Sequence record: KY555145.1
Strand: one strand, 5' to 3'
DNA: 64,000 nt
In this document: piece by piece, positions 2,233 through 61,177 of the stretch
How positions within the stretch are numbered: position 1 is the stretch's first letter
Layout: each line of letters starts with the position of its first letter
The notes under the pieces: generated by a model
Databases searched by the model: none
What the model was told of the DNA's origin: nothing
Seen by the model: the letters and a program-made list of their open reading frames with translations, nothing else
Translations under genes and position numbers: made by a program

Positions 2233-2262
2233 TTTACGGTTTGTTAACGTCTGGCCTCTAGG
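2233..2262 (+). promoter_or_regulatory. early promoter with CtrA-type box
   Basis: TTTA-CGGTTTG-TTAA followed by CTCTAGGG. Confidence 0.7.
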
Positions 2263-2311
2263 GTCGCCCTTGTCCCGGCGCGATCCCGCGCCATGCAAGG
2301 AGCCGCCCGCC

Positions 2312-2497
2312 ATGATCCCCGACTCGATCATGAACCCCCGCGACCATTTCCACCGCCTGCGCGAGGAAACCGCCCGCGCTCTGGTCGAGGCCTTCGCCGA
2401 AACCGACCCCGGCGAGGATTACCGCGCCGAAGAGAAGGCCGGCGCGTGGGTTGTCGCCTATTACGACGAGTCCGGCGCTTTCGTCGCCTATCTCTAG
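2312..2497 (+). CDS. hypothetical early protein
   Basis: AAGGAG RBS, 61 aa acidic. Confidence 0.7.
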   Translation: MIPDSIMNPRDHFHRLREETARALVEAFAETDPGEDYRAEEKAGAWVVAYYDESGAFVAYL

Positions 2498-2520
2498 CCG
2501 CCTTCGCCCCTGGCGCCGCG

Positions 2521-2552
2521 TTAACGGTTTGTTAACATGTTGGCGCCAGGGT
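2521..2552 (+). promoter_or_regulatory. early promoter with CtrA box
   Basis: TTAA-CGGTTTG-TTAA. Confidence 0.75.
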
Positions 2553-2595
2553 CGCCCTTGCCCGGCGCCGCCGCGCGCCTTCGGAGAAAAGCCCC

Positions 2596-3399
2596 ATGCT
2601 CTACACCCCCGCCGCTCGCCGCCTTCGCGCCTATCGCGAAACCGCCGCGAAGAACGCCGAAATTCACGCCCGCCCGCATATGGCCGGCAACGTCGCCGGC
2701 TATAACGAATCGGTTTGGCCGACGACGGCGCTAGGCGTCGCCGCCAAGGCCGGCGCCTTCAAGCGCCCCGAAACCGCCGGCAACTGGTCGGAAGATCGCA
2801 AGGCCTATCACGCCCCCGCGTGGCCGGCCGGCTGGCGCGTGCTGGGCACGGCCGAAGAGGTCTGCCGCAAGGAAGGATCGCGCCGGGTGGAACATTCGGG
2901 ATGGTACACGACGCCCGACGACTACAGCGCCACCCTTTCGGGCTATGTGCTGCAAATCCCCGCCCGCGACGGGGTCGCCCAATACGTCGCCGGGGTCGCC
3001 CATAGCGAGTTTGACAGGGTCACCGTCTACCCCTCGCGCCGTTTCGACAACCCGCTAGACGCGGCGAGCGCCGCCGACCAAATCGCCGAACGCGACGCCG
3101 AAGAGGAACGCGAATATCAAAGCGCGTGGCAAGCGGGCGTGCGCTTCGCCGAACTGGGCGCCGAGGTCAAGGAGGCCCGCGCCGAAGCCCTGGCGATCCT
3201 TGGCGAGCGCCGCAAGGTCAAGGGGCTGGAAACCCCCGCCTTGTGCGGCGCGATCCGGGCGCAAGTCGAGTCCTTGCTGGAGAAGATCGAAGAGGCCCGC
3301 GCCAAGCGCGACGCCCTGGCGCAAGGCAATGACCCCGGCCTCATGTTCTACCCCTCGCCGCGTCTGGTCGCGGCGTTCAATGAGGGGGCCGCGTCGTGA
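2596..3399 (+). CDS. hypothetical early protein
   Basis: 267 aa, GGAG RBS, typical codon bias. Confidence 0.8.
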   Translation: MLYTPAARRLRAYRETAAKNAEIHARPHMAGNVAGYNESVWPTTALGVAAKAGAFKRPETAGNWSEDRKAYHAPAWPAGWRVLGTAEEVCRKEGSRRVEHSGWYTTPDDYSATLSGYVLQIPARDGVAQYVAGVAHSEFDRVTVYPSRRFDNPLDAASAADQIAERDAEEEREYQSAWQAGVRFAELGAEVKEARAEALAILGERRKVKGLETPALCGAIRAQVESLLEKIEEARAKRDALAQGNDPGLMFYPSPRLVAAFNEGAAS

Positions 3400-3605
3400 G
3401 GGTCGCCCGCGATAGCTTCGCCGTGTTCTGGTCGCGTCCTGGCCAGAAATGGGGGTTTCACGCCGACATGAAACGGGCGCTTTACCCGACCCCCAAAGCC
3501 GCCGCCGACGCCTTCCGCGTCATGTTCCCGCGTGACGTGGTTCGGAGCGTCCGCGACGCTTCCGGCCGCTTCCTCGCCTTCAAGGAGTCCGCCCCGTGCG
3601 CCTGA
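3396..3605 (+). CDS. hypothetical protein
   Basis: GTGA overlap with upstream stop. Confidence 0.65.
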   Translation: MRVARDSFAVFWSRPGQKWGFHADMKRALYPTPKAAADAFRVMFPRDVVRSVRDASGRFLAFKESAPCA

Positions 3606-3877
3606 TCAGCTACAACGTCAACGGAACCGGTTTCAAGGGCGGCTCTGCCCCGCCCGCCCCATGCCCTGGCCTCGCCGGTCACGCCGACGACGCGGGGCTA
3701 TGGGTTCCCGACCGTGAGACGGTCGCCGCGCTTCTCCCCCGGCGCTGGCGCCACGCCTTCGCCCGCGCGGCGTTTTGGTATGACGCCCGCGACAACAAAA
3801 AGCCTTGCCGCGCCGACCTCTACGACGCGCGCGGCCGGTACCTGACTCAGGTCTGGGCGCATCCGGTTTTCGCCTGA
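3596..3877 (+). CDS. hypothetical protein
   Basis: AAGGAG RBS; terminator follows. Confidence 0.7.
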   Translation: MRLISYNVNGTGFKGGSAPPAPCPGLAGHADDAGLWVPDRETVAALLPRRWRHAFARAAFWYDARDNKKPCRADLYDARGRYLTQVWAHPVFA

Positions 3878-3883
3878 CCAGAC

Positions 3884-3909
3884 GCCCCGGAAAATCTTCC
3901 GGGGCATTT
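3884..3909 (+). terminator. intrinsic terminator
   Basis: GCCCCGG/CCGGGGC stem then ATTT. Confidence 0.55.
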
Positions 3910-3937
3910 ACCTTTTGTTAAGGAATGGCCTCTAGGT
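3907..3937 (+). promoter_or_regulatory. early promoter with CtrA-type box
   Basis: TTTA-CCTTTTG-TTAA ... CTCTAGGT. Confidence 0.7.
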
Positions 3938-3986
3938 TAGCCCTTGCCGCCGGGCAATCCCGCCCGCCGCTTCGGAGTTTCGGCCC

Positions 3987-4505
3987 ATGCCTCAATTCGT
4001 TCTGGACACGTCGGGCCAAGTCGCCCCGCCCGCTTCGGCCAAGCTTTGGCCCTATCCCCTCGCTTGGGATCAACTGAGCCCCTTCGCGCAAGGCTATATC
4101 GAGGCCCTGTTTTTCACCGAATCGTCGCTGGCCTATAATCGCGCCGAATGGTTCGGCGCCGAGTGTCAAGAGGCCTTGGAGGAAGGCACGTCGGGCGGGA
4201 ACATTCCGGGCGACGTCGGGTTTTCCGACCTCGCGCCCGACACCCTCAACCGCATCTTGAACGATTGCGCCCGCTTCCAACGCGAGCACGCCGACACCCT
4301 GGCCAAGGCCTATAACCACGGGGGCGACGCGGGCGACTATGACGAAACCGCCGCCGGCCGTGATTACTGGTACACCCGCAACGGCCATGGCGTCGGGTTC
4401 TGGGATCGCGGCCTAGGCGAGATTGGCGAGGCCCTGGCCAGCGCCGCCCGCTACAGCGAACAAAACGCCTCTTTTGAAGAGGACGGAAAAGTCTACCTCT
4501 CTTAA
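3987..4505 (+). CDS. conserved phage protein of unknown function
   Basis: Motif GRDYWYTRNGHGVGFWDR, recalled from many phage hypotheticals. Confidence 0.8.
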   Translation: MPQFVLDTSGQVAPPASAKLWPYPLAWDQLSPFAQGYIEALFFTESSLAYNRAEWFGAECQEALEEGTSGGNIPGDVGFSDLAPDTLNRILNDCARFQREHADTLAKAYNHGGDAGDYDETAAGRDYWYTRNGHGVGFWDRGLGEIGEALASAARYSEQNASFEEDGKVYLS

Positions 4506-4532
4506 CCTTTTGTTAAGACTTGTCCTCTAGGT
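4502..4532 (+). promoter_or_regulatory. early promoter with CtrA box
   Basis: TTAA-CCTTTTG-TTAA ... CTCTAGGT. Confidence 0.75.
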
Positions 4533-4588
4533 TTGACTTCGCCGCCGGGCAATCCCGCCCGGCGGTCCTCTTCTCAGGATCGCCCCTT

Positions 4589-5641
4589 ATGACCTCTCAT
4601 TCCATGGTTGCGCACCGTTGGGCGCAGGACGACGAGAACGGCCGCACCGCGCGCGGCTTCAACATGTATTTCGAGCGCTACGGACGCGGCGCCGACCGCG
4701 TCAACGTGATTTTTTCCTACGGGACTCACTTCCCGGCCGCCGCCTTCGTGACCGACGCGCACGGCCGCCGCGTGGTCCTCTACACGACGCGCCGCCGGAG
4801 CGTTTCGACCGCGAAACACCTTTCGCATATCCGCTACGCTATCCCGTCGGGCGTGCCGGTGTTTTCCGTGCCGAACGTGTCGCGGATGCACAAGCCGGGC
4901 GGCGCGGGCGACTTCCACGGGGACAACCTGCGCGCCTATATCGAGAGCGCCGCCGGCCTCGCCGAAAAGGCCAAGCGCGCCCGCGTCAACGGCCCTTGGC
5001 TGCTTAGCCAAGCCCGCGACCAACTCGCCGAAGCGCAACGCTACGCCGACGCCTTCAAGGTCAAGGGCTTCAAGGTCCCGGCCTTGGAAGACGTCGCCGG
5101 CCAATGGGCGAAGATGACGGCCGCCAAGGCGCGGGCCGAAGCCAAGGCCCGCAAGGAAGCCGAAAAGCGCGCCCGCGAAGCCCGCGAAGCCGAACGGCTC
5201 GCCGACGCCGAAGCCTTCGCCGCGTGGATGCGCGGCGAGCGCCAGAGCGCCCCGTTTAGCTACCGGGTGCGCGATGACGGGACCGTCTATCTTCGCCGCT
5301 TCCGGGGCGTGGTCCGCGACCTGCGCAGCCAAGAGCGCGACGGCTCGCGCGTCGATGAACTGCAAACCTCGCAAGGCGCGGCCGTGCCGTGGGAACACGC
5401 GGTCAAGGCCTTCCGGTTCATCAAGCTTTGCCGCGAACGCGGCGAGAGCTTCCACCGCAACGGCCGGGTGATTCGCGTCGGACACTTCCAAGTTGACGCG
5501 ATCAGCCCGAACGGGGACATGACGGCCGGTTGCCACCGGTTCGCGTGGGATGAAATCGAACGCATCGCCAGGGCCGAAGGGGTTTTCGACCTCCCCGCCG
5601 ACGCTGGCGCCGTCGAAACCCGGCAAGCCGAACCGGCCTAA
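4589..5641 (+). CDS. hypothetical early protein
   Basis: 350 aa, AGGA RBS; ATG at 4589 preferred to the upstream TTG. Confidence 0.8.
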   Translation: MTSHSMVAHRWAQDDENGRTARGFNMYFERYGRGADRVNVIFSYGTHFPAAAFVTDAHGRRVVLYTTRRRSVSTAKHLSHIRYAIPSGVPVFSVPNVSRMHKPGGAGDFHGDNLRAYIESAAGLAEKAKRARVNGPWLLSQARDQLAEAQRYADAFKVKGFKVPALEDVAGQWAKMTAAKARAEAKARKEAEKRAREAREAERLADAEAFAAWMRGERQSAPFSYRVRDDGTVYLRRFRGVVRDLRSQERDGSRVDELQTSQGAAVPWEHAVKAFRFIKLCRERGESFHRNGRVIRVGHFQVDAISPNGDMTAGCHRFAWDEIERIARAEGVFDLPADAGAVETRQAEPA

Positions 5642-5660
5642 GCCTCCCCGCCCCTCTCGC

Positions 5661-5686
5661 GCCCCGGCTCCCCGCCGGGGCGTTTT
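5661..5686 (+). terminator. intrinsic terminator
   Basis: GCCCCGGC/GCCGGGGC then GTTTT. Confidence 0.7.
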
Positions 5687-5696
5687 CGTGTACGCG

Positions 5697-5728
5697 GTAA
5701 CCTTTTGTTAACTTCTGGCTTCTAGGGT
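5697..5728 (+). promoter_or_regulatory. early promoter with CtrA-type box
   Basis: GTAA-CCTTTTG-TTAA ... TTCTAGGG. Confidence 0.7.
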
Positions 5729-5776
5729 GACTTTCGCCGCCGGGCAATCCCGCCCGCCGGCCAAGGATCGCAGACT

Positions 5777-6076
5777 ATGAATCTTTTCGTTGTCGCCATT
5801 GACCCCGCCCTCATCCCTTCGGCCGCCGGCTTCGTGGTCGCCTCCCCCTACGGGTGCGGCAAGTGGCGCGCGTGCGTCGGGAGCGAGGCGGACATGATCG
5901 CGCTTCGCGACAAGATGCGCCGCGCGCACCCGGCCCCGGAAGGCTACAGCGTCCAGCCCCTGGCGTCGTTCCTGGCCTATCTGGAGACGGTCGGGCAAAG
6001 CCCCTACGACCAGTTTCGCGCCCGCGACGCCGCCGCCCGCATCCTTGACACCCTGACAACGCACCTCGCCGCCTAG
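5777..6076 (+). CDS. hypothetical protein
   Basis: AAGGA RBS, 99 aa. Confidence 0.75.
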   Translation: MNLFVVAIDPALIPSAAGFVVASPYGCGKWRACVGSEADMIALRDKMRRAHPAPEGYSVQPLASFLAYLETVGQSPYDQFRARDAAARILDTLTTHLAA

Positions 6077-6083
6077 TCCCGCC

Positions 6084-6112
6084 GCCCCCGGCCGCGCGCC
6101 GGGGGCGCTTTT
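6084..6112 (+). terminator. intrinsic terminator
   Basis: GCCCCCGGC/GCCGGGGGC then TTTT. Confidence 0.65.
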
Positions 6113-6133
6113 CCCTCGAAAGGATCGCCGACC

Positions 6134-6442
6134 ATGACAACCCGTCTTATCGCCGTGCGCGGCCCGACCGCCGCCGAACTCGCCGACCCGTCCAGCCGCG
6201 CGGGCGGCGCCGAAGTCGTTTTCGAGCGGCGCGACCGCGAAGGCCGCACGCGCCTTGTGTTCGCCGCGACCTGCTACGGCTCATATCAGCAATGGGGCGA
6301 AACCCGCGACGTGCTCGCCGACAACGTCGAGGCGGTCACGCTCTGGGCCGAAGGCATGGCGGCCGTTGCCGCCCTCATCGACGAGAGCGACGACGACGAG
6401 GGCGACGACGCCCCGGCCGAAGATGACGACGGGGAGGCGTGA
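6134..6442 (+). CDS. hypothetical protein with acidic tail
   Basis: AAGGA RBS, 102 aa. Confidence 0.75.
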   Translation: MTTRLIAVRGPTAAELADPSSRAGGAEVVFERRDREGRTRLVFAATCYGSYQQWGETRDVLADNVEAVTLWAEGMAAVAALIDESDDDEGDDAPAEDDDGEA

Positions 6443-6445
6443 GCC

Positions 6446-6865
6446 ATGCGCACAACCAAGGCTCAACGCTTCGCCGCCATCGCCTTTGACGCCCTGGCCA
6501 AGGCCCTAAGCGAGCCGCGCCAAGCCGTCGCCCGCGTGACCAAATGGGAGGGCGCGGGCCATAGCTTCGCCAACCTGCAACGCGATTATGAGCGGTACGG
6601 CCCCGGCGCCCGCTCATGGTTCGGCCGGGCTGAAATGCGCTTCTTTGGGACGCGCCTAGAGGCCGCGCCGCTGGATTTCCCGGCGCTGGGCTGCACCCTC
6701 TTTCTGACCTCCGAAACCCCGCCCGGCGCCGGCCGGGTCTGGACCCTTCGCGCCTATGTCTGGGCTTCGGCCGATATCACCACGCTAACCCATGGCGACG
6801 AAACCGACGCGGCGACCGCGCAAGCGGCCTTTGACCTGCTTTGGCGGGTCCTTTCGCAGCGGTAA
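6446..6865 (+). CDS. hypothetical protein
   Basis: GGAGG RBS; SWFGRAEMRFFGTRL. Confidence 0.75.
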   Translation: MRTTKAQRFAAIAFDALAKALSEPRQAVARVTKWEGAGHSFANLQRDYERYGPGARSWFGRAEMRFFGTRLEAAPLDFPALGCTLFLTSETPPGAGRVWTLRAYVWASADITTLTHGDETDAATAQAAFDLLWRVLSQR

Positions 6866-6893
6866 CCTTTTGTTAACTTCTGCCCGCTAGGGT
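6862..6893 (+). promoter_or_regulatory. early promoter with CtrA-type box
   Basis: GTAA-CCTTTTG-TTAA ... CGCTAGGG. Confidence 0.7.
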
Positions 6894-6941
6894 CTTCTTG
6901 CGGCCGGGCAATCCCGCCCGGCCGCTCAAGGATTGGATCGC

Positions 6942-7214
6942 ATGACCCGCGCTCAAGCCCTCGCCGACATGAACGCCCTTCCCGGTATCATCGCCTCCTT
7001 TGAGCGCGAGACGGGTGAATATCGCGTCACCCTGCGCTTTGGCCTGCTCCCCATGGGGCGCGGCGCCCAAGAGTGGATGCACGCGCGCCGCGAAGCCGTC
7101 GCCAGCTACAGCGACGACAAGGCCGACGCCCTGGCCACCGCCCGCGACATGTCCGCCCGCTGGGAGGCGATGAGCGCCGAAGAGCGTTCGCGCCTCTATC
7201 ACAACCCCGCCTAA
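6942..7214 (+). CDS. hypothetical protein
   Basis: 90 aa after promoter and hairpin. Confidence 0.7.
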   Translation: MTRAQALADMNALPGIIASFERETGEYRVTLRFGLLPMGRGAQEWMHARREAVASYSDDKADALATARDMSARWEAMSAEERSRLYHNPA

Positions 7215-7279
7215 AGCCCCCGCGCCGCCCTGGCCTTCGCCGGGGCGGCTCCCTCAACCCCTCGCAAGGATCGCACCCC

Positions 7280-7564
7280 ATGACCGCCCGTAAGCCCCTG
7301 ACCAAGGAACAAAAGGCCCGCCGCCGCGCGACCCGTCGCGCCGCCCGCCTCAACTGGTCGGATGAGCGCCGCGCCCGCGAATTCGAGCGTCAAGCCCGCT
7401 TCTTCCTGATGATCGCCACCCGCGCCCAAGGCGCCGGCCAAGGCCGGGAAGCCGCCCGCCTCGCCACGGCCGCACAACGCAAGGTGACTAGCTGGCGCAT
7501 GGCGCAAGCCTGCGCCCGAATTAACGCCCTGGCCGCGCATCCTTGGGCGGGGGTCGCCGCCTGA
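7280..7564 (+). CDS. basic hypothetical protein (copy 1)
   Basis: MTARKPLTKEQKARRR; duplicated at 9825. Confidence 0.75.
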   Translation: MTARKPLTKEQKARRRATRRAARLNWSDERRAREFERQARFFLMIATRAQGAGQGREAARLATAAQRKVTSWRMAQACARINALAAHPWAGVAA

Positions 7565-7746
7565 TGGCCCGCCGCGTCCGCTACATGCCGTCCGAAGCTC
7601 TGGACCTCGCCGACGCGCTCGGCGAGGGGCTGGACCTCGTCAAGGCGATGAGCGAGGCCCGCCGCGCGGGCGCGCCGATCGCCGACACCCTCGCCGCCCT
7701 CGAAGACTGGGCTTTAACCGCCGTCAACCTCATCGAAGAGGACTAA
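7564..7746 (+). CDS. hypothetical protein (copy 1)
   Basis: TGATG coupling; duplicated at 10109. Confidence 0.75.
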   Translation: MARRVRYMPSEALDLADALGEGLDLVKAMSEARRAGAPIADTLAALEDWALTAVNLIEED

Positions 7747-7751
7747 ACCCG

Positions 7752-7934
7752 ATGACGCACCCTCACGCCCTGGCGCTGATCGCCCTCGCGGAAAAGGTGT
7801 TGCCGCTTACCCGGCTGCACCCGCTGGACCAACGCGCCGCCGCCGTCGATCTAATCGGCGACCTCTACGCCCTCGCCGACTCCATCGACGCCGACCCGCA
7901 ACCCGCCGCCTTGGCGCAACCGAAGGCCGCCTAA
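7752..7934 (+). CDS. hypothetical protein (copy 1)
   Basis: GAGGA RBS; duplicated at 10297. Confidence 0.75.
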   Translation: MTHPHALALIALAEKVLPLTRLHPLDQRAAAVDLIGDLYALADSIDADPQPAALAQPKAA

Positions 7935-7937
7935 GCC

Positions 7938-8522
7938 ATGACCGCACGCCCGACCCCCGCCGCCCTTCTCGCCGCGTCCGACACCCTGGCGAATTATCTT
8001 CGCGGTTCCGCCTCGCATCGCGCCTATCCGGCGCCGGTTCTCGCCGCCCTCGAAGTGCTCGAAGATGAGGGCGCAACCGGCGCCTTTGAGCGAGGCGACC
8101 CGGACTCCGAGCCGACCCCCGGCGCCCTGAAGCTCCTAGCCGGCATGGTTTCGGCCGCCGCGTCCAATGAGGCCGAAATCATCGCCGCGAACCTGACCAA
8201 ATCGGCGACACTGGCCGAAGCCGTGGCCAGTTATGACGCGATGAGCGATCTTGCCGCATGGCTGGAATACCAAGGCGAGGACGCCGCCGCCGACGAAATG
8301 CGCGGCTATTATCTCCCTCTGGAGGGCGAAGTGAACGCCGCCCGCGCGACGGGGGAAGCCCTCGCCGCCGCGATCAAGCCCGACCCGGACGCCATGTCAC
8401 GTCTAACGCAATCGCTCGCCGAATTCGTCGGACCCTCGCGCGCCCTGCAAATCGTTGGCGAACTCCCCGCCGCCCTCAATGACGCGGACCTGATTCTAGT
8501 CCGCAAGCCCAAGGAGGCTTAG
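7938..8522 (+). CDS. hypothetical protein, variable slot allele 1
   Basis: 194 aa, coupled. Confidence 0.75.
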   Translation: MTARPTPAALLAASDTLANYLRGSASHRAYPAPVLAALEVLEDEGATGAFERGDPDSEPTPGALKLLAGMVSAAASNEAEIIAANLTKSATLAEAVASYDAMSDLAAWLEYQGEDAAADEMRGYYLPLEGEVNAARATGEALAAAIKPDPDAMSRLTQSLAEFVGPSRALQIVGELPAALNDADLILVRKPKEA

Positions 8523-8525
8523 ACC

Positions 8526-9014
8526 ATGCCCCGCGACGTTTCCCGCTTCGCCACCCCTGAAAAGATCATCGGGGGTTACCTCATGACCGCCCAACGCGAC
8601 GGGGCCATGACTGAGGCCGCCGACGTCATCGCCACCCTAGAGGCGGCCGGCTATGTGATCGCCCGCCGCCGCGACGTCTACACCGACTCCGGGGTCAAGT
8701 TGGGCGACGCCCTGGCGGCGCTTTACGACGCCGTTCCTAACTACGCCGTGCGCTCGCAACGGCTCGCCGACGCCCTGACCCCGGCGCGGGATTACGTCTA
8801 TCAACCCCGGTTCCGGGTTAAGTTGGACGCCGCCCCCGGCGCGCGCCTGACTGACTGCGAAACCGGCGCGTGCGTCTATTTCCAGCCCGGTGACGACGCC
8901 GAAGCCTTCCGCGCCCTCTTCGCCCCCTGGCTTCGCGATAACGACGAGACGGGCGACGGTAAGGCCCTGGCCTCGATGATGAACGCCACGGCCGAAGAAT
9001 ACTTTTCCGGCTAA
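8526..9014 (+). CDS. hypothetical protein, allele 1
   Basis: AAGGAGG RBS; homologous to 11078..11656. Confidence 0.8.
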   Translation: MPRDVSRFATPEKIIGGYLMTAQRDGAMTEAADVIATLEAAGYVIARRRDVYTDSGVKLGDALAALYDAVPNYAVRSQRLADALTPARDYVYQPRFRVKLDAAPGARLTDCETGACVYFQPGDDAEAFRALFAPWLRDNDETGDGKALASMMNATAEEYFSG

Positions 9015-9124
9015 GTCATCATTCCTACCGTCTATGACTTGTCACCGGCCGAACTCTTGCCCGGTGACAGTCTGGGCAAGTAAAGCTCACTCTGGATTTT
9101 ATGACTTAGCGCAAAGGATTGAAA

Positions 9125-9199
9125 TTGCTCGAAAAATTCCTAGAAGCTCACAAAGTCGTTTTCTGGCTGCTCTTGCTGGCCTGTTTGTGGCGCTTTTAA
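9125..9199 (+). CDS. 24-aa membrane peptide (copy 1)
   Basis: AAAGGA RBS plus TTG; MLEKFLEAHKVVFWLLLLACLWRF. Confidence 0.45.
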   Translation: MLEKFLEAHKVVFWLLLLACLWRF

Positions 9200-9227
9200 C
9201 GGTTTGTTAACCCCTGGCCCTCTAGGG
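9196..9227 (+). promoter_or_regulatory. early promoter with CtrA box
   Basis: TTAA-CGGTTTG-TTAA ... CTCTAGGG. Confidence 0.75.
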
Positions 9228-9282
9228 TCGAATTCCCGGCGCGGCAATCCCGCCGCCCCGGCCTTCCTTCGGAGCTTCCAAA

Positions 9283-9729
9283 ATGTTCGCTTCCGTGACC
9301 CTTCCCGCCCATGACGCCCAAGGCCTGAGCCTCGAAACCGTCCACATGGTTTTCGCCCGCGAACTGGCGCAACATTTCGACCACGTGACTTCCGCCCCCG
9401 TGGTCGAAAGCTGGACCGACGAGGAAACCGGCGCCGACCACGCGCAAGCCGCCGTCTGCTTCACCGTTTCGGCGACCCCGGCCGCGTGGGAAGCCAAGGG
9501 CGGGCGGCTCGCGCGCCGGCTGGAAAACCTCGCCGCGCGCTATGCCGCCGACTGCGACGCCCCGGCCCTGACTGTCACCCATTGCGACGGGCAAACGGTC
9601 TATGTCGGCGCTCTGGAAGCCCTGGCGCGCCCCGCTCCGGTGCAAGGCCCGACCCGCGACGCGGACCCGGCTTTCCTCCCCCGCCAGCGTGAGGACAAGG
9701 CCGCCCGCTTCGATCGCCTGACCGCCTAG
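9283..9729 (+). CDS. hypothetical protein (copy 1)
   Basis: GGAG RBS; near-identical to 11925..12371. Confidence 0.8.
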   Translation: MFASVTLPAHDAQGLSLETVHMVFARELAQHFDHVTSAPVVESWTDEETGADHAQAAVCFTVSATPAAWEAKGGRLARRLENLAARYAADCDAPALTVTHCDGQTVYVGALEALARPAPVQGPTRDADPAFLPRQREDKAARFDRLTA

Positions 9730-9746
9730 CCCCTGGCCTTCCCCTA

Positions 9747-9780
9747 GCGCACCGCCCCTAGAAAGGCGGTGCGCTTTTCT
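9747..9780 (+). terminator. intrinsic terminator
   Basis: GCGCACCGCC/GGCGGTGCGC then TTTTCT. Confidence 0.8.
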
Positions 9781-9787
9781 GTGTCTG

Positions 9788-9820
9788 TTTACTTGTTGTT
9801 AAGGAATAGCCTGCTAGTGT
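9788..9820 (+). promoter_or_regulatory. early promoter with CtrA-type box
   Basis: TTTA-CTTGTTG-TTAA ... TGCTAGTG. Confidence 0.65.
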
Positions 9821-9824
9821 CTCC

Positions 9825-10109
9825 TTGACCGCCCGTAAGCCCCTGACCAAGGAACAAAAGGCCCGCCGCCGCGCGACCCGTCGCGCCGCCCGCCTCAACT
9901 GGTCGGATGAGCGCCGCGCCCGCGAATTCGAGCGTCAAGCCCGCTTCTTCCTAATGATCGCCACCCGCGCCCAAGGCGCCGGCCAAGGCCAGGAAGCCGC
10001 CCGCCTCGCCACGGTCGCACAACGCAAGGTGACAAACTGGCGCATGGCGCAGGCCTGCGCCCGGATTAACGCCCTGGCCGTGCATCCTTGGGCGGGGGTC
10101 GCCTCCTAA
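9825..10109 (+). CDS. basic hypothetical protein (copy 2, TTG start at the junction)
   Basis: Homolog of 7280..7564; RBS lost. Confidence 0.6.
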   Translation: MTARKPLTKEQKARRRATRRAARLNWSDERRAREFERQARFFLMIATRAQGAGQGQEAARLATVAQRKVTNWRMAQACARINALAVHPWAGVAS

Positions 10110-10291
10110 TGGCCCGCCGCGTCCGCTACATGCCGTCCGAAGCTCTGGACCTCGCCGACGCGCTCGGCGAGGGGCTGGACCTCGTTAAGGCGATGAGCGA
10201 GGCCCGCCGCGCGGGCGCGCCTATCGCCGACACCCTCGCCGCCCTCGAAGACTGGGCTTTAACCGCCGTCAACCTCATAGAAGAGGACTAA
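10109..10291 (+). CDS. hypothetical protein (copy 2)
   Basis: Identical protein to 7564..7746. Confidence 0.75.
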   Translation: MARRVRYMPSEALDLADALGEGLDLVKAMSEARRAGAPIADTLAALEDWALTAVNLIEED

Positions 10292-10296
10292 ACCCA

Positions 10297-10479
10297 ATGA
10301 CGCACCCTCACGCCCTGGCGCTGATCGCCCTCGCCGAAAAGGTGTTGCCGCTTACCCGGCTGCACCCGCTCGACCAACGCGCCGCCGCCGTCGACCTAAT
10401 CGGCGACCTCTACGCCCTCGCCGACTCCATTGACGCCACCCCGCAAGCCGCCGCCCTGGCGCAACCGAAGGCCGCCTAA
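10297..10479 (+). CDS. hypothetical protein (copy 2)
   Basis: Near-identical to 7752..7934. Confidence 0.75.
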   Translation: MTHPHALALIALAEKVLPLTRLHPLDQRAAAVDLIGDLYALADSIDATPQAAALAQPKAA

Positions 10480-10482
10480 GCC

Positions 10483-11073
10483 ATGAACCCGAACCGCTAC
10501 CGCCTCGCGCCCCGCGACCGCTTCAGCCGCGAGCTTGCCGAAACGCTCTATCAGGCGGCCGAAGCCGTCGCCCGCGTGATTCCGCTAGTGCCGGAGTCCG
10601 TCCCCGATGAGCGCCGCGCGCTGGGCAAGGTCCGCGCCGACCTGCTAACCCATAGCGCCGGCGCCCTTGTTCCCAAGCCGCCGGCCGCCGTGCTCGCAAC
10701 CCTCGTTTGGGTTGTCGAGATGGCGCAAGATCGCGCGACCAACGCCGATTTCAACACCGCCCAAGAGGGACTCGACGAACACGAGTCCCTAGCCTTTGTC
10801 GCCGACTGGCTGGAAGCCGAAGGCCAGGACGTGACGCCGATTCGCAACGCGCAACCGTCCGCCGACGCCCTGGCCGAACTCGCCGCCCGTCGCGACGCCG
10901 AACAAGAGGCGCTAGACGCCTTGGAGGCCGCCGCCCTGGCCGAAGCGCCGGGCGACGTGATCACCGAAGCCTTGCGCCCCTATCTGGGCGCCACCCTGGC
11001 CGAAAACCACGCCGACGACGTGCTAGACGCCCTCACGCGCGCCGGCTTCCAAATCACCCGCAAGGAGGCTTAA
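10483..11073 (+). CDS. hypothetical protein, variable slot allele 2
   Basis: 196 aa in the same slot as 7938..8522 but highly diverged. Confidence 0.75.
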   Translation: MNPNRYRLAPRDRFSRELAETLYQAAEAVARVIPLVPESVPDERRALGKVRADLLTHSAGALVPKPPAAVLATLVWVVEMAQDRATNADFNTAQEGLDEHESLAFVADWLEAEGQDVTPIRNAQPSADALAELAARRDAEQEALDALEAAALAEAPGDVITEALRPYLGATLAENHADDVLDALTRAGFQITRKEA

Positions 11074-11077
11074 GACC

Positions 11078-11656
11078 ATGTCCCGCGCCGTTTCCACCTT
11101 CGCCACCCCTGAAAAGCTCATCGGGGGTTACCTCATGTCGGCGGCCCGTCACGGGGCCATGACCGAAGCCGCCGAAGTCATCGCCACCCTAGAGGCGGCC
11201 GGCTATGTGATCGCCCGCCGCCGCGACGTCTTCACCGATGAGGGCGAGAAGCTGGGCGACCTGTTGGCGGCGCTTTATGACGCCGTCCCGAACTACGCCG
11301 TAAGATCGCAGCGCCTCGCCGACGCCCTCAAGCCGGCGCGAGACTACGTCTATCAGCCCCGGTTCCGGGTCAAGCTGGACGCCGCGCCCGGCGCGCGCCT
11401 GACCGACTGCGACACGGGCGCAACGGTCTATTTCCAGCCGGGCGACGACGCCGACGCCTTCCGGGCCGAATTCGCCCCGTGGGTTCACGACGCCAATGTG
11501 ACGGCCGAAGGCGCGGCCCTGGCCTCGATGATGAACCCGACGGCCGAAGAGTATTTCAGCGCCAGCGGGGAAGATGACGACTTGCCCGGCGCGCTTTCCG
11601 CCTTCGATTCCGCCGGCTCCGGCCAAAGACTGGGCTACGTTCGCCCGCCTCGCTAA
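11078..11656 (+). CDS. hypothetical protein, allele 2
   Basis: Homolog of 8526..9014 with a 30-aa extension. Confidence 0.8.
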   Translation: MSRAVSTFATPEKLIGGYLMSAARHGAMTEAAEVIATLEAAGYVIARRRDVFTDEGEKLGDLLAALYDAVPNYAVRSQRLADALKPARDYVYQPRFRVKLDAAPGARLTDCDTGATVYFQPGDDADAFRAEFAPWVHDANVTAEGAALASMMNPTAEEYFSASGEDDDLPGALSAFDSAGSGQRLGYVRPPR

Positions 11657-11766
11657 GTCATCATTCCTACCGTCTATGACTTGTCACCGGCCGAAGTCTT
11701 ACCCGGTGACAGTCTGGGCAAGTAAAGCTCACTCTGGATTTTATGACTTAGCGCAAAGGATTGAAA

Positions 11767-11841
11767 TTGCTCGAAAAATTCCTAGAAGCTCACAAAGTCG
11801 TTTTCTGGCTGCTCTTGCTGGCCTGTTTGTGGCGCTTTTAA
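11767..11841 (+). CDS. 24-aa membrane peptide (copy 2)
   Basis: Identical to 9125..9199. Confidence 0.45.
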   Translation: MLEKFLEAHKVVFWLLLLACLWRF

Positions 11842-11869
11842 CGGTTTGTTAACCCCTGGCCCTCTAGGG
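11838..11869 (+). promoter_or_regulatory. early promoter with CtrA box (copy 2)
   Basis: TTAA-CGGTTTG-TTAA. Confidence 0.75.
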
Positions 11870-11924
11870 TCGAATTCCCGGCGCGGCAATCCCGCCGCCC
11901 CGGCCTTCCTTCGGAGCTTCCAAA

Positions 11925-12371
11925 ATGTTCGCTTCCGTGACCCTTCCCGCCCATGACGCCCAAGGCCTGAGCCTCGAAACCGTCCACATGGTTTTCGCCC
12001 GCGAACTGGCGCAACATTTCGACCACGTGACTTCCGCCCCCGTGGTCGAAAGCTGGACCGACGAGGAAACCGGCGCCGACCACGCGCAAGCCGCCGTCTG
12101 CTTCACCGTTTCGGCGACCCCGGCCGCGTGGGAAGCCAAGGGCGGCCGGCTCGCGCGCCGGCTGGAAAACCTCGCCGCGCGCTATGCCGCCGACTGCGAC
12201 GCCCCGGCCCTGACTGTCACCCATTGCGACGGGCAAACGGTCTATGTCGGCGCTCTGGAAGCCCTGGCGCGCCCCGCCCCGGTGCAAGGCCCGACCCGCG
12301 CGGCGGACCCGGCTTTCCTCCCCCGCCAGCGCGAGGACAAGGCCGCCCGCTTCGATCGCCTGACCGCCTAG
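11925..12371 (+). CDS. hypothetical protein (copy 2)
   Basis: Near-identical to 9283..9729. Confidence 0.8.
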   Translation: MFASVTLPAHDAQGLSLETVHMVFARELAQHFDHVTSAPVVESWTDEETGADHAQAAVCFTVSATPAAWEAKGGRLARRLENLAARYAADCDAPALTVTHCDGQTVYVGALEALARPAPVQGPTRAADPAFLPRQREDKAARFDRLTA

Positions 12372-12389
12372 CCCCTGGCCTTCCCCCTA

Positions 12390-12423
12390 GCGCACCGCCC
12401 CTAGAAAGGCGGTGCGCTTTTCT
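12390..12423 (+). terminator. intrinsic terminator (copy 2)
   Basis: Same stem as 9747. Confidence 0.8.
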
Positions 12424-12430
12424 GTGTCTG

Positions 12431-12463
12431 TTTACTTGTTGTTAAGGAATAGCCTGCTAGTGT
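12431..12463 (+). promoter_or_regulatory. early promoter with CtrA-type box
   Basis: TTTA-CTTGTTG-TTAA ... TGCTAGTG. Confidence 0.65.
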
Positions 12464-12514
12464 CTCCTTGTCGGCGGACGCATCCCGCGCCCGCCCCTCT
12501 CTGGATCGCTCCCC

Positions 12515-12935: not shown

Positions 12936-12961
12936 CGGGGGGTCGCAAGGAGACACCCGAC

Positions 12962-51667: not shown

Positions 51668-52444
51668 ATGGCCATCCAGAACCCCCATTCCACGACGCCG
51701 GGCGTGATGCCGCACCTGACTCCCGGAGAGGTCGGCGTCAACAAGGCCGACGACATTCTCTGGTTCCGCTCCCAGGGCCGGCGCGTGCCGATCATCCTGA
51801 GCGACCTCACCCGCGCCCCGCCGGCGGACGGCTATGTGGGCGCGCCCCTGGCCCTGGAGGGCGGCGCGCCGGTCTGGAACGTCAAGCTCTTGCCGTCCTC
51901 GATTGTCGCCGGCGCGGTCAAGGTCGACCTGCCGCCCGCCGCCGGCCTGCACGCCATGCCCAGCGTCCTGCTCCAAGGCCTGGGAACCGACCGCGTCCTG
52001 GCGGCCAACGACCTGGACCTCACCCCCTTCTATGTCCGCTCCGACTCCATCACCCTGACCCATCTGGCCTTCAGCGTGCGCTCGGCGGGCGCGCCGGCCA
52101 TGCGCGTGGGGATCGTCGATAGCTTCGGCGTCGTCCAGGCCGACATCCTGGTCGCCGCGCCGGTCGTGGGGGCCAATGTCGTGGCGCTCTCGCCGGTCCT
52201 GACCCTCCAGCGCGGCGTCTACCGCACCATCCTGGCGACGACCGGAGCGGTGACCGTGGGGATCGCCACGGGCGCGCGCATGGAACAGGGCTGGGACATC
52301 ATCGCCGACGCCCCGTCGTTCATCCACGGCTACAGCGGCAGCAAGAACACCGCTGGCGGCATCGGGAGCCTGCCGGCGCTGACCCCGCGCCGCGACCCCG
52401 CGCCGGGCCAGGATCACGCCGTCCTCCTGCGCTGGACGGCGTGA
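51668..52444 (+). CDS. fibre-associated protein
   Basis: PGEVGVNKADDILWF motif, paralogous C-domain. Confidence 0.7.
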   Translation: MAIQNPHSTTPGVMPHLTPGEVGVNKADDILWFRSQGRRVPIILSDLTRAPPADGYVGAPLALEGGAPVWNVKLLPSSIVAGAVKVDLPPAAGLHAMPSVLLQGLGTDRVLAANDLDLTPFYVRSDSITLTHLAFSVRSAGAPAMRVGIVDSFGVVQADILVAAPVVGANVVALSPVLTLQRGVYRTILATTGAVTVGIATGARMEQGWDIIADAPSFIHGYSGSKNTAGGIGSLPALTPRRDPAPGQDHAVLLRWTA

Positions 52445-52453
52445 ATCTTGACA
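52439..52453 (+). promoter_or_regulatory. late promoter motif
   Basis: GCGTGAATCTTGACA, TTAACC downstream. Confidence 0.7.
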
Positions 52454-52506
52454 CTCGGTCGAAATACGGTTAACCTGCGCGCTCATCTGGAGTTTCGAGC
52501 GCCAAC

Positions 52507-56965: not shown

Positions 56966-56968
56966 TTC

Positions 56969-57494: not shown

Positions 57495-57511
57495 TGTCAT
57501 GAATCTTGACT
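57495..57511 (+). promoter_or_regulatory. late promoter motif
   Basis: TGTCATGAATCTTGACT. Confidence 0.65.
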
Positions 57512-58344: not shown

Positions 58345-59211
58345 GTGTCCGAGTCTGCTGAGTTCAACCCGCTCGACCAAAATCAGTTCCCTCCTCGCCT
58401 CACCAAGGCTGCTGCGCGACAGGCGCGGCGCCAGGAGCGCAGCCAGAAAAAGGACCCCACGGCCAACAAGCCGAACTACAAGGCGCTCGAAGCCAAGACC
58501 GAACGCCAACGTCGCTATATCCAGGCCCTCAAGGCCGGTGAAAGCGTCATCGCCATTGGCGGAGCCGGCACGGGGAAGACCTATATCCCGTCCCGGCTCT
58601 TCGCCAAGAAGCTGATCGAGGCGAAGATCGAACGCCTGATCATCGCCCGCGTCACCGCCTCGCGCCCCAAGCACGCCCTGGGCTTCCTGCCCGGCAAGCT
58701 GGAAGCCAAGCTCGCGCCGTGGCTCGTCCCGGTGATCGAGGGCGTCAAGGCCGAGATGAACGCCCAGACCTACACGCAGTTGCAGGAAGCCGGCAAGATC
58801 GAGTTCGCCTCGTTCGAGCACATGCGCGGGCGGACTTTCGCCGAGTGCTGCGTCCTGCTCGACGAGGCCCAGAACGCCGACTACAAGGACCTGAAGATGG
58901 TCCTGACCCGCTGGGGCGAGAACGCCCAATACGCGGTCACCGGCGACATCGACCAGATCGACGTCGACGATTCGGGCCTGGAGACGGTCGTCGACATCGT
59001 CGAGACCCACGACATCCCGATCCACGTGATCGAGTTCACCGACGAGGACGTGGTCCGCTCGCCCATGGCCAAGGCCTGGGTCAAGGCGTTCTCCGCCCAC
59101 GAAGGCAAGGACGAACGGGCGCGGCGCTTCCACCGTCCCGCTGTCAGGAATCTTGACGTCCTGCCAGCTTTTATCGATAATGGCCGTGTCACGAAACCCG
59201 TGGCGTCGTGA
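58345..59211 (+). CDS. phoH: PhoH-family ATPase
   Basis: GGAGTGKT Walker A, LGFLPG, HMRGRTF, LDEAQNA, TRWGE, GDIDQID, DVVRS. Confidence 0.93.
   Translation: MSESAEFNPLDQNQFPPRLTKAAARQARRQERSQKKDPTANKPNYKALEAKTERQRRYIQALKAGESVIAIGGAGTGKTYIPSRLFAKKLIEAKIERLIIARVTASRPKHALGFLPGKLEAKLAPWLVPVIEGVKAEMNAQTYTQLQEAGKIEFASFEHMRGRTFAECCVLLDEAQNADYKDLKMVLTRWGENAQYAVTGDIDQIDVDDSGLETVVDIVETHDIPIHVIEFTDEDVVRSPMAKAWVKAFSAHEGKDERARRFHRPAVRNLDVLPAFIDNGRVTKPVAS
59142..59158 (+). promoter_or_regulatory. late promoter motif inside phoH
   Basis: TGTCAGGAATCTTGACG. Confidence 0.55.
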
Positions 59212-59228
59212 CAAAGACGTAGCGCACC

Positions 59229-59750
59229 ATGGCCTTCACCTTCGTTGTTGAGACTGGCGCCGGGGACCCGGCCGCGAACTCGTACTGCGACGTGCAGTTC
59301 GCGGACGACTACATCTACGCCAATGTCTACGCCAACACCGCCTGGGACGCGCTGGATCAGGACGGCAAGGAACGCTTCCTGGTCCGGGCGTCCAAGTACC
59401 TGGACCGGTCGATCGCCTGGGCCGGGGAGAAGGTCGATGAGGACTCCGGCCTGCGCTGGCCGCGCGCTGGCGTCTATGACGTCGACGGCTTCCTGATCCC
59501 CAGCGACGCCATCCCGCAGCAACTCATGGAGGCCACCGCCGAGATGGCGGCGGCCCTCATGAACAACGACTGGACCTCGCCGCAGACCACGCGCGGCATG
59601 AAGGAAATCCAGGTCGACGTCATCGAACTGAAGTTCGACAGCGAAATCCAGCGCGGCTCCATGCCCGACATCGTCATGTCGATCCTCGAAGGTCTGGGGG
59701 TCGTCAAGACCGGCACCCGTCCGGCCTTCAAGAAGATCATCCGCCACTAA
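59229..59750 (+). CDS. head-tail adaptor (DnaT-like family)
   Basis: ANSYCDV..ADDY..RASKYLD..GLRWPR..IPQQLMEAT. Confidence 0.8.
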   Translation: MAFTFVVETGAGDPAANSYCDVQFADDYIYANVYANTAWDALDQDGKERFLVRASKYLDRSIAWAGEKVDEDSGLRWPRAGVYDVDGFLIPSDAIPQQLMEATAEMAAALMNNDWTSPQTTRGMKEIQVDVIELKFDSEIQRGSMPDIVMSILEGLGVVKTGTRPAFKKIIRH

Positions 59751-60142
59751 TGGCCCTCGAAGCCTTCATCCGTTCGCAGGTCGTCGTCGCCTTCAACCAG
59801 CTAGACGACATCGCCAAGCGTTGGACCTACGTCCAGCGCTCGGGCGATCCGGTGCGTGACGTCGAGACCGGCGTGACCACCTACCCGTCGACCGAGATCG
59901 TCATTCCCAAGGCGGTCAAGGTCCGGTTCAAGAAGGACGAGAAGGACGCCCACGGCCAGACCCTGGTGGGCGAGAAGGTCCTGTTCCCCCGCGTCTACCT
60001 GCCGGGGGATTTCGAGACCGCCACGTCCGACTATCTCGTCGACGAGAAGGACATCATCTGGGAGATCATGAGCGACCTGGGCGACCCGGCCTCGGCGCTG
60101 GCGATGTTCCAGGTCCGCAGCACGCGGAAGAAGACCCCGTGA
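59750..60142 (+). CDS. head-closure/head-tail joining protein
   Basis: Position and size. Confidence 0.6.
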   Translation: MALEAFIRSQVVVAFNQLDDIAKRWTYVQRSGDPVRDVETGVTTYPSTEIVIPKAVKVRFKKDEKDAHGQTLVGEKVLFPRVYLPGDFETATSDYLVDEKDIIWEIMSDLGDPASALAMFQVRSTRKKTP

Positions 60143-60612
60143 AGACGGGCGGAGCCAAGCTCAGCTTCTACACCGACGGGAACCTGGAGGCGGCGTTCAA
60201 GCGCTTCTTCGCCACCGCCGAGAAGCGCTATGACGAGCGCGCCGATCGCCTGCTGATCAAGCTGAACGAACTGATCCTGGCGCGCACGCCCGTCTGGGAG
60301 GGCGACACGATCCACAACTGGCGCTGGTCGACGCGGGCGCCGGACATGCGTCACGAAGCCCCGCTCGACAATGGCGATCCGGGCCGCACGAGCGAGATGA
60401 GCCTGGGCGAGGAGCCGCGCCGCCGCGTCAACGAGACGCGCCCGCGCCAGTCTCTGGCCGGCGCGCTGCGCGCCAAGGAGCCGATCGACATCTATCTGAC
60501 CAACACCGCCGAGAGCGCGGTCGATCTCGAATACGGCCTGCTCCCGACCAGGGCGCAGAGCCGAAACAAAATGGGCATGGTCCGAATCTCCATTAAAGAG
60601 GTGTTCGGGTGA
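60139..60612 (+). CDS. neck/tail completion protein (HK97 gp10-like)
   Basis: RTPVWEG...NW..S ... IYLTN...Y/LEYG. Confidence 0.7.
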   Translation: MKTGGAKLSFYTDGNLEAAFKRFFATAEKRYDERADRLLIKLNELILARTPVWEGDTIHNWRWSTRAPDMRHEAPLDNGDPGRTSEMSLGEEPRRRVNETRPRQSLAGALRAKEPIDIYLTNTAESAVDLEYGLLPTRAQSRNKMGMVRISIKEVFG

Positions 60613-60683
60613 TCCCCGCCCTCATCATTCTGCCGCGCGTCTATCTCGCCGCGTGGCTGTCGTTCTGGCTGGGAGAGGACTGA
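60609..60683 (+). CDS. 24-aa hydrophobic peptide
   Basis: MIPALIILPRVYLAAWLSFWLGED, coupled at both ends. Confidence 0.4.
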   Translation: MIPALIILPRVYLAAWLSFWLGED

Positions 60684-61138
60684 TGCTCGAACACGACATG
60701 CTCCGGCAAGTCCTGGAGCAGCAGGCGGTCACCGCCGCCCCGACGATCGGGCTGAAGCTGAGCTTCGACAACTCCGAATTCGTCCAGCCGAAGGATGGCC
60801 TGCACTGGGCCGAGTTCTGGGTCCAGACGGGCAACACCGTCCCGTGCGAGGTCGCCGGCCCGCGCGGCTACGAAAAGACCTCCGGGCTGATCCAGTTCAC
60901 CCTCAAGGCTCCGGAGGAAGAGGGCAACGGCGCGATCCTCAAGAAGGCGGGCGCGCTCAAGAAGGTCTTCAACCGCCGGCAATGGGTCGTGCCGCCGGAT
61001 GGCTATGTCACCCTCGACCCGATCTCGGTTCAGTCGCACGGCAAGCCGATCGACGGCTTCTATAATGTCGTGGTCTGGGCGACCCTCTGGTTCCACCACC
61101 GCGATCCCGACGCCGACGATCGCTGGATTCGCGGTTGA
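60683..61138 (+). CDS. tail terminator protein
   Basis: DNSEF..P, G.IQFTLKAP..EG; position before tail tube. Confidence 0.7.
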   Translation: MLEHDMLRQVLEQQAVTAAPTIGLKLSFDNSEFVQPKDGLHWAEFWVQTGNTVPCEVAGPRGYEKTSGLIQFTLKAPEEEGNGAILKKAGALKKVFNRRQWVVPPDGYVTLDPISVQSHGKPIDGFYNVVVWATLWFHHRDPDADDRWIRG

Positions 61139-61160
61139 CCACGTCTTTCACGCCGGCTAA

Positions 61161-61177
61161 GGTCGTGAATCTTGACA
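61161..61177 (+). promoter_or_regulatory. late promoter motif upstream of tail tube
   Basis: GGTCGTGAATCTTGACA. Confidence 0.75.

Follow-up and report, generated by a model that had tools for sequence, protein, structure and literature searches.

The closest described counterpart of the system considered here was reported for the same phage group by Mascolo et al. (2022), who found that sites for the host regulator CtrA cluster in the direct terminal repeats (DTRs) of phiCbK-like phages, Ccr29 among those named, upstream of small genes of unassigned function (PMC9437464). Phosphorylated CtrA bound upstream of CbK_gp005 and CbK_gp018 in electrophoretic mobility shift assays, both promoters were nearly silent in a ctrA(ts) host, and their lacZ activity was CtrA-dependent (PMC9437464). 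The authors argued that firing is postponed until the predivisional stage ("lytic deferment"), and their scan with GcrA, SciP and DnaA matrices gave no positional pattern (PMC9437464). The present analysis deals with the promoters in a stretch of 64,000 nucleotides (hereafter the window), identified by megablast as bases 1–64000, with unchanged coordinates, of Caulobacter phage Ccr29 (KY555145.1), a phiCbK-like siphophage (Shapirovirus; 229,319 bp) of Caulobacter swarmer cells. Motifs were judged genome-wide, with the remainder of the Ccr29 genome added to the scans. The earlier work treated full CtrA sites only and included neither the GTCGTGAATC-TTGACA promoter family, nor a sigma-73 family, nor the half-sites of morphogenesis and replication promoters, all described below.

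Two host systems bear on the comparison. GcrA is a sigma-70 cofactor acting at methylated YGAKTCK sites (PMC4647560; PMC5887438; PMC9976885), with R33, N34, I37, G38, H41 and R42 as its base-contacting residues (PMC5887438). Among the 32 NGANTCN contexts ranked by Haakonsen et al., from which the YGAKTCK consensus was obtained, AGATTCA came 32nd and served as the mutant context in which GcrA no longer binds or activates (PMC4647560); in direct targets the GcrA box has its centre at -20, -30 or +5 to +30 (PMC9976885). The consensus of SciP chromatin immunoprecipitation (ChIP) peaks is (G/A)TTAACCAT(A/G), where TTAACCAT is the CtrA 8-mer (PMC4083442, PMC4426382). As in the host promoters described by Fumeaux (2014; PMC4083442), the same 10-nt consensus overlaps core elements in Ccr29; in the host it usually lies beside a full CtrA box in CtrA-activated promoters, whereas in Ccr29 it stands alone with a normal -35. 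With the host GcrA/CcrM system the phage shares GANTC in sigma-70-type promoters, sites at several positions and in both orientations, and a GcrA with both domains, but its site is in the worst context for host GcrA and centred at about -38, and its protein has four of the six contact residues replaced.

Among phage systems, MotA/AsiA of T4 re-aims the host polymerase at middle and late promoters, and T5 carries its pre-early genes in a long terminal repeat. Ccr29 resembles the former in its tiered promoter families on the host polymerase and in an extra upstream box at -35/-40, but the -35 is kept rather than replaced and the candidate activator is a homolog of a host cell-cycle factor that binds sigma domain 2 instead of domain 4. 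Like T5, Ccr29 has a long terminal repeat in which many small genes are served by promoters and terminators of their own. The T5 A1 protein is discussed in PMC3556154. In phi29 (cited in PMC9437464), the host developmental master regulator Spo0A restrains lytic genes in an unsuitable cell state; host, regulator and site architecture differ in Ccr29, where one regulator would activate one tier and repress another.

Three promoter families were recognized in Ccr29 (Table 1), and confidence is high both in these families and in the CtrA part of the model that follows. Together they would make up a transcription programme in three tiers that uses the sigma-73 RNA polymerase of the host. In tier A, nine DTR promoters in which a CtrA box replaces the -35 would be activated by phosphorylated host CtrA, as was shown for identical phiCbK sequences. 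Tier B would provide the bulk of the early programme from two long arms of small genes, including the one with tgrL and the phage gcrA; "early" is shown for tgrL alone, and the link of tgrL to class B and the early expression of gcrA are presumed. Tier C, with the upstream 10-mer GTCGTGAATC, a perfect -35 and a weak -10, probably requires an activator. For this role host GcrA is poorly suited, and the best candidate would be the phage's own GcrA (gp235), which has kept its sigma-binding domain and changed its recognition helix. About half of the tier C promoters carry the half-site GTTAACCA(T/C)G, where binding of CtrA and/or SciP would impede the polymerase in G1 swarmers. Taken as a whole, this programme, with phage GcrA serving class C and CtrA/SciP as a brake, has in our estimate slightly less than an even chance of being correct. 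What is new in it is the second (class C) tier and its possible private GcrA, the CtrA tier being already known.

Promoter signals were extracted over the genome as k-mers enriched against a third-order background, which gave three: the class A -10 element (CTCTAGGGT), the block GTCGTGAATCTTGAC, and the class B marker GTGTTGACA. The class C combination GTCGTGAATC-TTGACA has nine copies in the window, found only at 22144–61177. Accordingly, GANTCTTGAC occurs nine times, always on the plus strand (22149, 25092, 28172, 33157, 35904, 52443, 57501, 59148 and 61167), each copy placing a GANTC within a sigma-70-type promoter and directly against TTGAC, while 0.34 such cases are expected; motif counts were compared with those in shuffled sequence, and all of them exceed chance by far. 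Genome-wide the class has 19 members, all oriented toward downstream genes and all with GANTC abutting the -35. The ten outside the window comprise three at tail/lysis genes, one before the packaging genes, two at 117–120 kb, and four on the minus strand of the replication module, before the ribonucleotide reductase, polymerase-region, A1-like and helicase genes. With transcription starts inferred from the -35 hexamer and a 17-nt spacer, the consensus is kept only from about -45 to -30. The -35 is perfect (TCTTGACA), and most of the -10 elements are judged weak because an E. coli-type promoter scan detects no class C promoter; the same scan detects no class A promoter either.

In the infection time course of McLaughlin et al. 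(2023), about 41% of the genes were early, including those for replication, the structural and lysis genes were middle to late, and tgrL (phiCbK gp216) peaked at 15 min (PMC10688885). The preliminary description of this DNA, which read the phage programme as a mirror of the host cell-cycle cascade, had taken the GANTC class for late promoters. This does not hold, since four copies lie in the replication module, called early by RNA sequencing (RNA-seq; PMC10688885); class C would rather be a general non-early class, heading morphogenesis, lysis, packaging and replication genes, and not strictly late. The timing of the replication module cannot be assigned from sequence alone, because it has both class C promoters and a class B promoter at 117650. 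The claim that the CtrA and GANTC classes are spatially exclusive was borne out (CtrA boxes only at 2233–12935, GANTC promoters only at 22144–61177), and it results from the division of the genome into DTR and gene modules.

The candidate activator, gp235, is encoded outside the window. It is a GcrA homolog of 182 aa (Pfam PF07750, E 5.4e-25) that matches the solved GcrA chains 7ye1_G, 5yix_B and 5yiu_A and has both the DNA-binding and the sigma-interacting domain, the latter strongly conserved. At the six host contact positions it has K, S, C, G, D and R, and the K, S, C and D replacements are invariant in three phage GcrAs that are 63–67% identical. According to tblastn, such homologs are restricted to Shapirovirus and Poindextervirus phages. 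The state of the promoter element follows this distribution. In the GcrA-encoding phages Ccr29 and Rogue, the upstream element is GTCGTGAATC and GTCGTGA(A/T)TC, respectively, and GANTC abuts the -35 in 19 of 19 and 6 of 6 cases. Among the phages lacking GcrA, the Brevundimonas phage Bajun keeps ACGTCG with the next six bases relaxed (GANTC in 4 of 11), Colossus and CcrPW have TGCCAG-NNN (2 of 4 in each), and CcrSC has a GC(A/G)TT(T/A)T-like element (0 of 4). Within the viral collection, the exact 15-mer is multi-copy solely in GcrA-encoding genomes. In a scan of bacterial genomes, almost all of the matches listed for this 15-mer were single, in unrelated organisms and chance-like, and nothing among them pointed to a host regulon. 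An inverted copy of the 10-mer is present in a promoter spacer (102417), and additional copies lie above the portal promoter (21881 and 21922 on the plus strand, 22127–22136 on the minus strand), an arrangement consistent with a flexibly tethered monomeric domain.

The phage GcrA homolog was pointed out by Gill et al. (2012), with the proposal that its targets are host genes (PMC3556154); our literature search found no study on phage GcrA function or on phiCbK promoter motifs. Being a correlation over few independent lineages, the distribution described above leaves a link between phage GcrA and class C tentative and less likely than not. The same caution applies to the more specific proposal that gp235 may be an orthogonal sigma-73 cofactor whose helix K-S-x-x-C-G-x-x-D-R would read GTCGTGAATC at about 19 promoters with weak -10 elements, many of which the CtrA/SciP half-site would shut in G1. 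It is also possible, if doubtful, that the 10-mer is read by another phage or host factor or acts like an upstream-promoter (UP) element, the GANTC being incidental and phage GcrA acting on host genes only, as Gill et al. had proposed such targets (PMC3556154). The block is indeed longer than a GcrA site, differs in version from lineage to lineage, and forms a quasi-palindrome, TGTC-NN-GANTC-NN-GACA, which suggests a dimer; moreover, its TGTCGTG differs at a single base from TGTCGCG, the SciP motif determined in vitro (PMC4083442). This last resemblance, to the SciP motif of Tan et al., was rejected, since TGTCG[CT]G has 125 matches in the genome and carries too little information. Furthermore, the GANTC positions are invariant solely in phages that have a GcrA and are relaxed in the others, and the inverted copy at 102417 and the extra portal copies suit a tethered monomer better than a fixed dimer.

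The third family, class B, was overlooked in the preliminary description. It follows the sigma-73 consensus, with TTGACA, 17 nt, a GCTAGAAG-like -10, a conserved leader CGACGACAAC and a ribosome-binding site, and has about twenty copies along two arms diverging from ~169.3 kb. In addition to the promoter listed in Table 1, the window has a class B or B-like copy at 57328 and a looser match at 55497. The untranslated leader CGACGACAAC is kept just before the ribosome-binding site throughout the class (genome 117650–207026; window 13542), and an upstream CTGGC element is common to these promoters. The promoter at 117650 heads the replication module, and the one at 165662 precedes gp229, the Ccr29 match of tgrL (phiCbK gp216). 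The phage gcrA lies six genes from tgrL and has TTGTCA, 17 nt and TAGGGT in its upstream region; its position in an arm served by class B promoters makes early expression likely.

Class A comprises five TTAA-N7-TTAA boxes, where 0.02 are expected in the window, and four TTTA-N7-TTAA variants. Each of the nine boxes overlaps the -35 position, is followed after 11–12 nt by a TAGGGT-like -10 hexamer, and lies 55–75 nt before a plus-strand start codon; several of these promoters directly follow strong terminators. All nine fall within the DTR (span 2233–12935), and in a whole-genome scan full CtrA boxes were confined to the two DTR copies. The repeats of Colossus and CcrPW have 12 and 14 boxes of this kind, respectively. 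In box and core promoter, Ccr29 2521 (gp005) is identical to CbK_gp005, and 9196 and 11838 (gp019 and gp025) to CbK_gp018. The CtrA-ON promoters of the preliminary description were thus correctly read as CtrA-activated, yet this was not new, because the tested phiCbK sequences are identical to three promoters of Ccr29.

Transcription from this region could be followed in four RNA-seq runs of one study. Since 74% of the sampled words of a stretch 98.6% identical to phiCbK were present in them, the runs represent infections with phiCbK or a near relative. Mapped on positions 1–6000 of the window, they consist of assembler contigs of flat depth, without time labels and from unsynchronized infections. 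The contigs cover the genes behind class A promoters. One starts at 4536–4538 in all four runs, at most ~4 nt from the +1 predicted for the 4502 box, and in two of the four phiCbK contigs begin at ~2290–2306, below the 2233 promoter. The contig over the terminase 3' end stops at ~1745 in three runs, a position matching an annotated phiCbK terminator, and at ~797 in the fourth. The depth ratio of gp009 to terminase varied from 0.55 to 1.64 between runs and was not used as evidence.

An important question is when the CtrA-box genes would fire. The preliminary description would have them active as early genes in swarmer cells, the reverse of the delay proposed by Mascolo et al. Under lytic deferment they would be silent in a freshly infected swarmer and fire on the return of CtrA in the predivisional cell, so that they would not be the earliest genes. 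Their activation is CtrA-dependent, CtrA-activated host genes have been argued to be held off in G1 (PMC9437464), and class B can supply the true early genes, tgrL included. On the other hand, class A boxes lack the SciP-type extension TTAACCAT, and the RNA contigs show the repeat genes to be well transcribed in unsynchronized infections. The analogy with T5, whose terminal-repeat genes enter first, points the same way. We consider deferment a minority possibility.

Class C differs from class B in a downstream half-site of CtrA/SciP type. TTAAC/GTTAA occurs within +6 to +60 of the -35 in 10 of the 19 class C promoters versus none of the 12 strict class B promoters (binomial P ~5e-12), and 4 of the 4 replication-module promoters of class C have it. 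Outside the DTR the pentamer has 38 positions in 203 kb. CGTTAACCA is among the most over-represented 9-mers (11 copies, 0.41 expected), and GTTAACCAYG has four matches, 0.08 being expected. GTTAACCATG matches (G/A)TTAACCAT(A/G) exactly; this consensus is exact at 22167 and 28212, has one mismatch at 25133 and is weaker at 52470. With starts inferred as above, the half-site overlaps the core promoter, lying in the spacer (22167, 105646), over the -10 (52470, 98388, 91310) or at about +1 (25133, 28212, 111601). Six phages of five lineages, with portal proteins 47–92% identical to that of Ccr29, have the same -35 and the same GTTAACCATG at the portal promoter, while the 7–8 nt between the two elements vary. 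Three of the TTAACC half-sites named in the preliminary description (22168, 25134, 28213) are where it placed them, and the fourth lies at 52470, not 52472, a slip of 2 nt. Its suggestion that CtrA represses there is reasonable from the sequence, and SciP, the G1-specific partner, is to be added; for binding of CtrA/SciP at the half-site the chances appear about equal either way.

Two further interpretations of the half-site were rejected. It is hardly what remains of a full CtrA box whose 5' half has degenerated, as the TTAA match 11 nt upstream is 1–2 of 4 and the spacing from the -35 varies between phages. Nor is it generally an RNA hairpin loop, being in the untranscribed spacer of portal-type promoters; the hairpin at 25133 starts at about +1. 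Rather unlikely, too, is that GTTAACCATG is a part of the core promoter (spacer or extended -10, with TG at -15/-14) or the target of a factor common to these phages. In its favor, the portal-type motif invariably has TG as its last two bases, with a CATCC-like -10 one base further on and a fixed distance of 7–8 nt to the -35, and it is kept in both Caulobacter and Brevundimonas phages. Elsewhere, however, the motif lies over the -10, at +1 or right after the -35, it matches the host consensus at 10 of 10 positions, and TTAAC is very rare outside the repeat.

Several points weigh against the three-tier reading with its private GcrA and CtrA/SciP brake. Host GcrA requires N6-methyladenine (m6A), swarmer and stalked cells normally lack CcrM, and host ccrM mRNA rose merely ~1.3–1.5-fold during infection. 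CtrA binds lone half-sites weakly. A GcrA site centred near -38 is without precedent, the conserved upstream block of 10–11 nt exceeds the 7-bp GcrA site, and Bajun, a phage with no GcrA, has retained the GTCG part of this block as well. The co-occurrence of GcrA and GANTC amounts to one or two evolutionary events, with many other genes differing between the lineages. Finally, the replication module with its class C promoters is reported early and is also headed by the class B promoter at 117650.

The preliminary description had assigned the late promoters to GcrA after clearance of CtrA; in this model host GcrA, acting on CcrM-methylated GANTC, would switch them on in the infected swarmer. 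GANTC abuts the -35 in every class C promoter, CtrA-type half-sites overlap half of the core promoters, and one copy, 28172 (TGATTCT), fits YGAKTCK. As in the host, coding sequence has about half the expected number of GANTC (76 vs. 158), and the intergenic regions show no depletion (30 vs. 31 expected); of the 125 sites in the window, 9 are part of the promoter motif, 19 fall within tRNA genes and 76 within coding sequence. Nevertheless, host GcrA as the class C activator is improbable. The context is TGAATCT, i.e., the lowest-ranked AGATTCA, in 8 of the 9 window sites and 18 of the 19 genome-wide (PMC4647560), 28172 being the sole exception, and the class C GANTC would occupy about -40 to -36, with a centre at ~-38 outside the known positions (PMC9976885). 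Moreover, related phages keep the promoter yet drop the GANTC, and the class also precedes replication genes reported early. The observations of the preliminary description are therefore confirmed and its interpretation is partly supported, and a cell-cycle link by way of phage GcrA and CtrA/SciP is plausible. Very improbable is that the GANTC is a methylation mark distinguishing parental from new phage DNA and coupling class C to replication without GcrA: its position beside the -35 is invariant, and the two-fold depletion in coding sequence suggests that the sites matter, but no methyltransferase is annotated in Ccr29 and the relatives manage without the site.

The 22 tRNA genes (52818–57043) contain 19 GANTC, or 11 per kb, many apparently in T-arm sequence (GTTCGAATC / GTTCGAGTC), and these inflate the local GANTC density. 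At genome positions 102340–102460, a promoter-like site on the minus strand has the inverted 10-mer (102417) in its spacer, GTTAACCAT as -10 and an ATG a few bases on; it precedes an unannotated open reading frame (ORF) in a 730-nt annotation gap and possibly gives a leaderless transcript. At 25127–25147 a GC-rich inverted repeat with perfect 7-bp arms begins near the predicted +1 and is followed by a T run, 7 nt before the gp053 start codon; its 7-nt loop is overlapped by the half-site at 25133. A similar layout occurs at genome 111590–111615. Such a repeat could be a protein-binding palindrome or an attenuator-like element. The gp047 gene as annotated (21094–21483, minus strand) looks truncated, as an open ORF of ~250 aa begins near 21839. 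The extended ORF (21094–21839, minus strand) has a signal-peptide-like N-terminus and matches a transglutaminase-like cysteine peptidase annotated in phiCbK and Rogue; inverted GTCGTGAATC and inverted TTAACCA lie upstream of it.

The DTR is a long, non-permuted repeat organized in short transcription units, with nine promoters and strong terminators between the units. Beyond it the window has a small-gene block (13.6–20.8 kb), the portal, capsid and tail modules and the 22-tRNA array. The terminase large-subunit gene (genome 214074–216806) extends 779 nt into the right-hand repeat copy, so that the left genome end (1–779) is a promoterless 3' terminase fragment. A tandem duplication of ~2.5 kb (7278–9824 / 9823–12467, 87.7% identity), in which six genes and two class A promoters were copied, explains why the repeat measures 13.3 kb in Ccr29 and 10.3 kb in phiCbK. 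Just inside the repeat, at 780–2112, there are three distinct arrays: about seven copies of GGGGACCCTGG spaced by ~24 nt (852–1007), some five or six TTTTGACG-type repeats (1762–1903), and five copies of a 17-nt unit with GTTAAC (1912–2076). Lone TTAACC/GGTTAA half-sites occur at 789–866 and 2046–2108, and none of the four infection RNA runs gave contig coverage at 1801–2200. For these arrays a role as replication origin, packaging site or CtrA-binding array is conceivable.

Table 1. Terminal repeat and promoters of the three classes in the Ccr29 window.
Feature	Position	Strand	Elements	Downstream gene and remarks
Left DTR	1..13292	+		13,292 bp; contains all CtrA-box promoters of the genome; from annotation and whole-genome scan
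Class A	2233..2264	+	TTTA-N7-TTAA variant box, TAGGGT -10	Upstream of gp004
Class A	2521..2552	+	Perfect TTAA-N7-TTAA box, CAGGGT -10	Upstream of gp005; orthologous to the promoter assayed for CbK_gp005 (PMC9437464)
Class A	3907..3938	+	Variant box	Upstream of gp008; directly after terminator 3884-3905
Class A	4502..4533	+	Perfect box, TAGGTT -10	Upstream of gp009
Class A	9196..9228	+	Perfect box	Upstream of gp019; sequence of the tested CbK_gp018 promoter (PMC9437464)
Class A	9788..9820	+	Variant box	Upstream of gp020; after terminator 9746-9775
Class A	11838..11870	+	Perfect box	Upstream of gp025; duplicate of the 9196 promoter
Class A	12431..12463	+	Variant box	Upstream of gp026; after terminator 12389-12418
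Class A	12904..12935	+	Perfect box, TATGGT -10	Upstream of gp027
Class B	13542..13570	+	TTGACA, 17 nt, TAAGTG, leader CGACGACAC, ribosome-binding site	Heads gp028-gp045
Class C	22144..22176	+	GTCGTGAATC, TTGACA, 8 nt, then GTTAACCATG in the spacer	Portal gene
Class C	25087..25142	+	GTTAACCACG at 25133-25142	Upstream of gp053
Class C	28167..28221	+	Sole copy with GATTC; GTTAACCATG at 28212-28221	Upstream of gp062
Class C	33152..33167	+	No half-site	Upstream of gp073
Class C	35899..35914	+	No half-site	Upstream of gp077; after terminator 35846-35871
Class C	52438..52477	+	TTAACCTG at 52470, overlapping the -10 (TAACCT)	Upstream of gp087 and the tRNA array
Class C	57496..57511	+		Upstream of gp090
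Class C	59143..59158	+		Upstream of gp092; within the 3' end of phoH
Class C	61162..61177	+	TAGGGT -10	Upstream of gp096 (tail module)

If the proposed programme is correct, the phage carries a private copy of the host's CtrA-to-GcrA switch rather than just listening to that of the host. The phage GcrA homolog, unexplained since 2012, would acquire a function, and its DNA-binding domain would be a natural specificity variant of that of GcrA. The conserved CtrA/SciP half-sites would make it directly testable, with strains, reporters and RNA-seq data that are available, whether infection is gated at G1-S and in what way. Should the second tier be real, phiCbK-like phages would be the first viruses shown to have copied a host cell-cycle transcription cofactor, altered its DNA specificity and used it to time their own genes.

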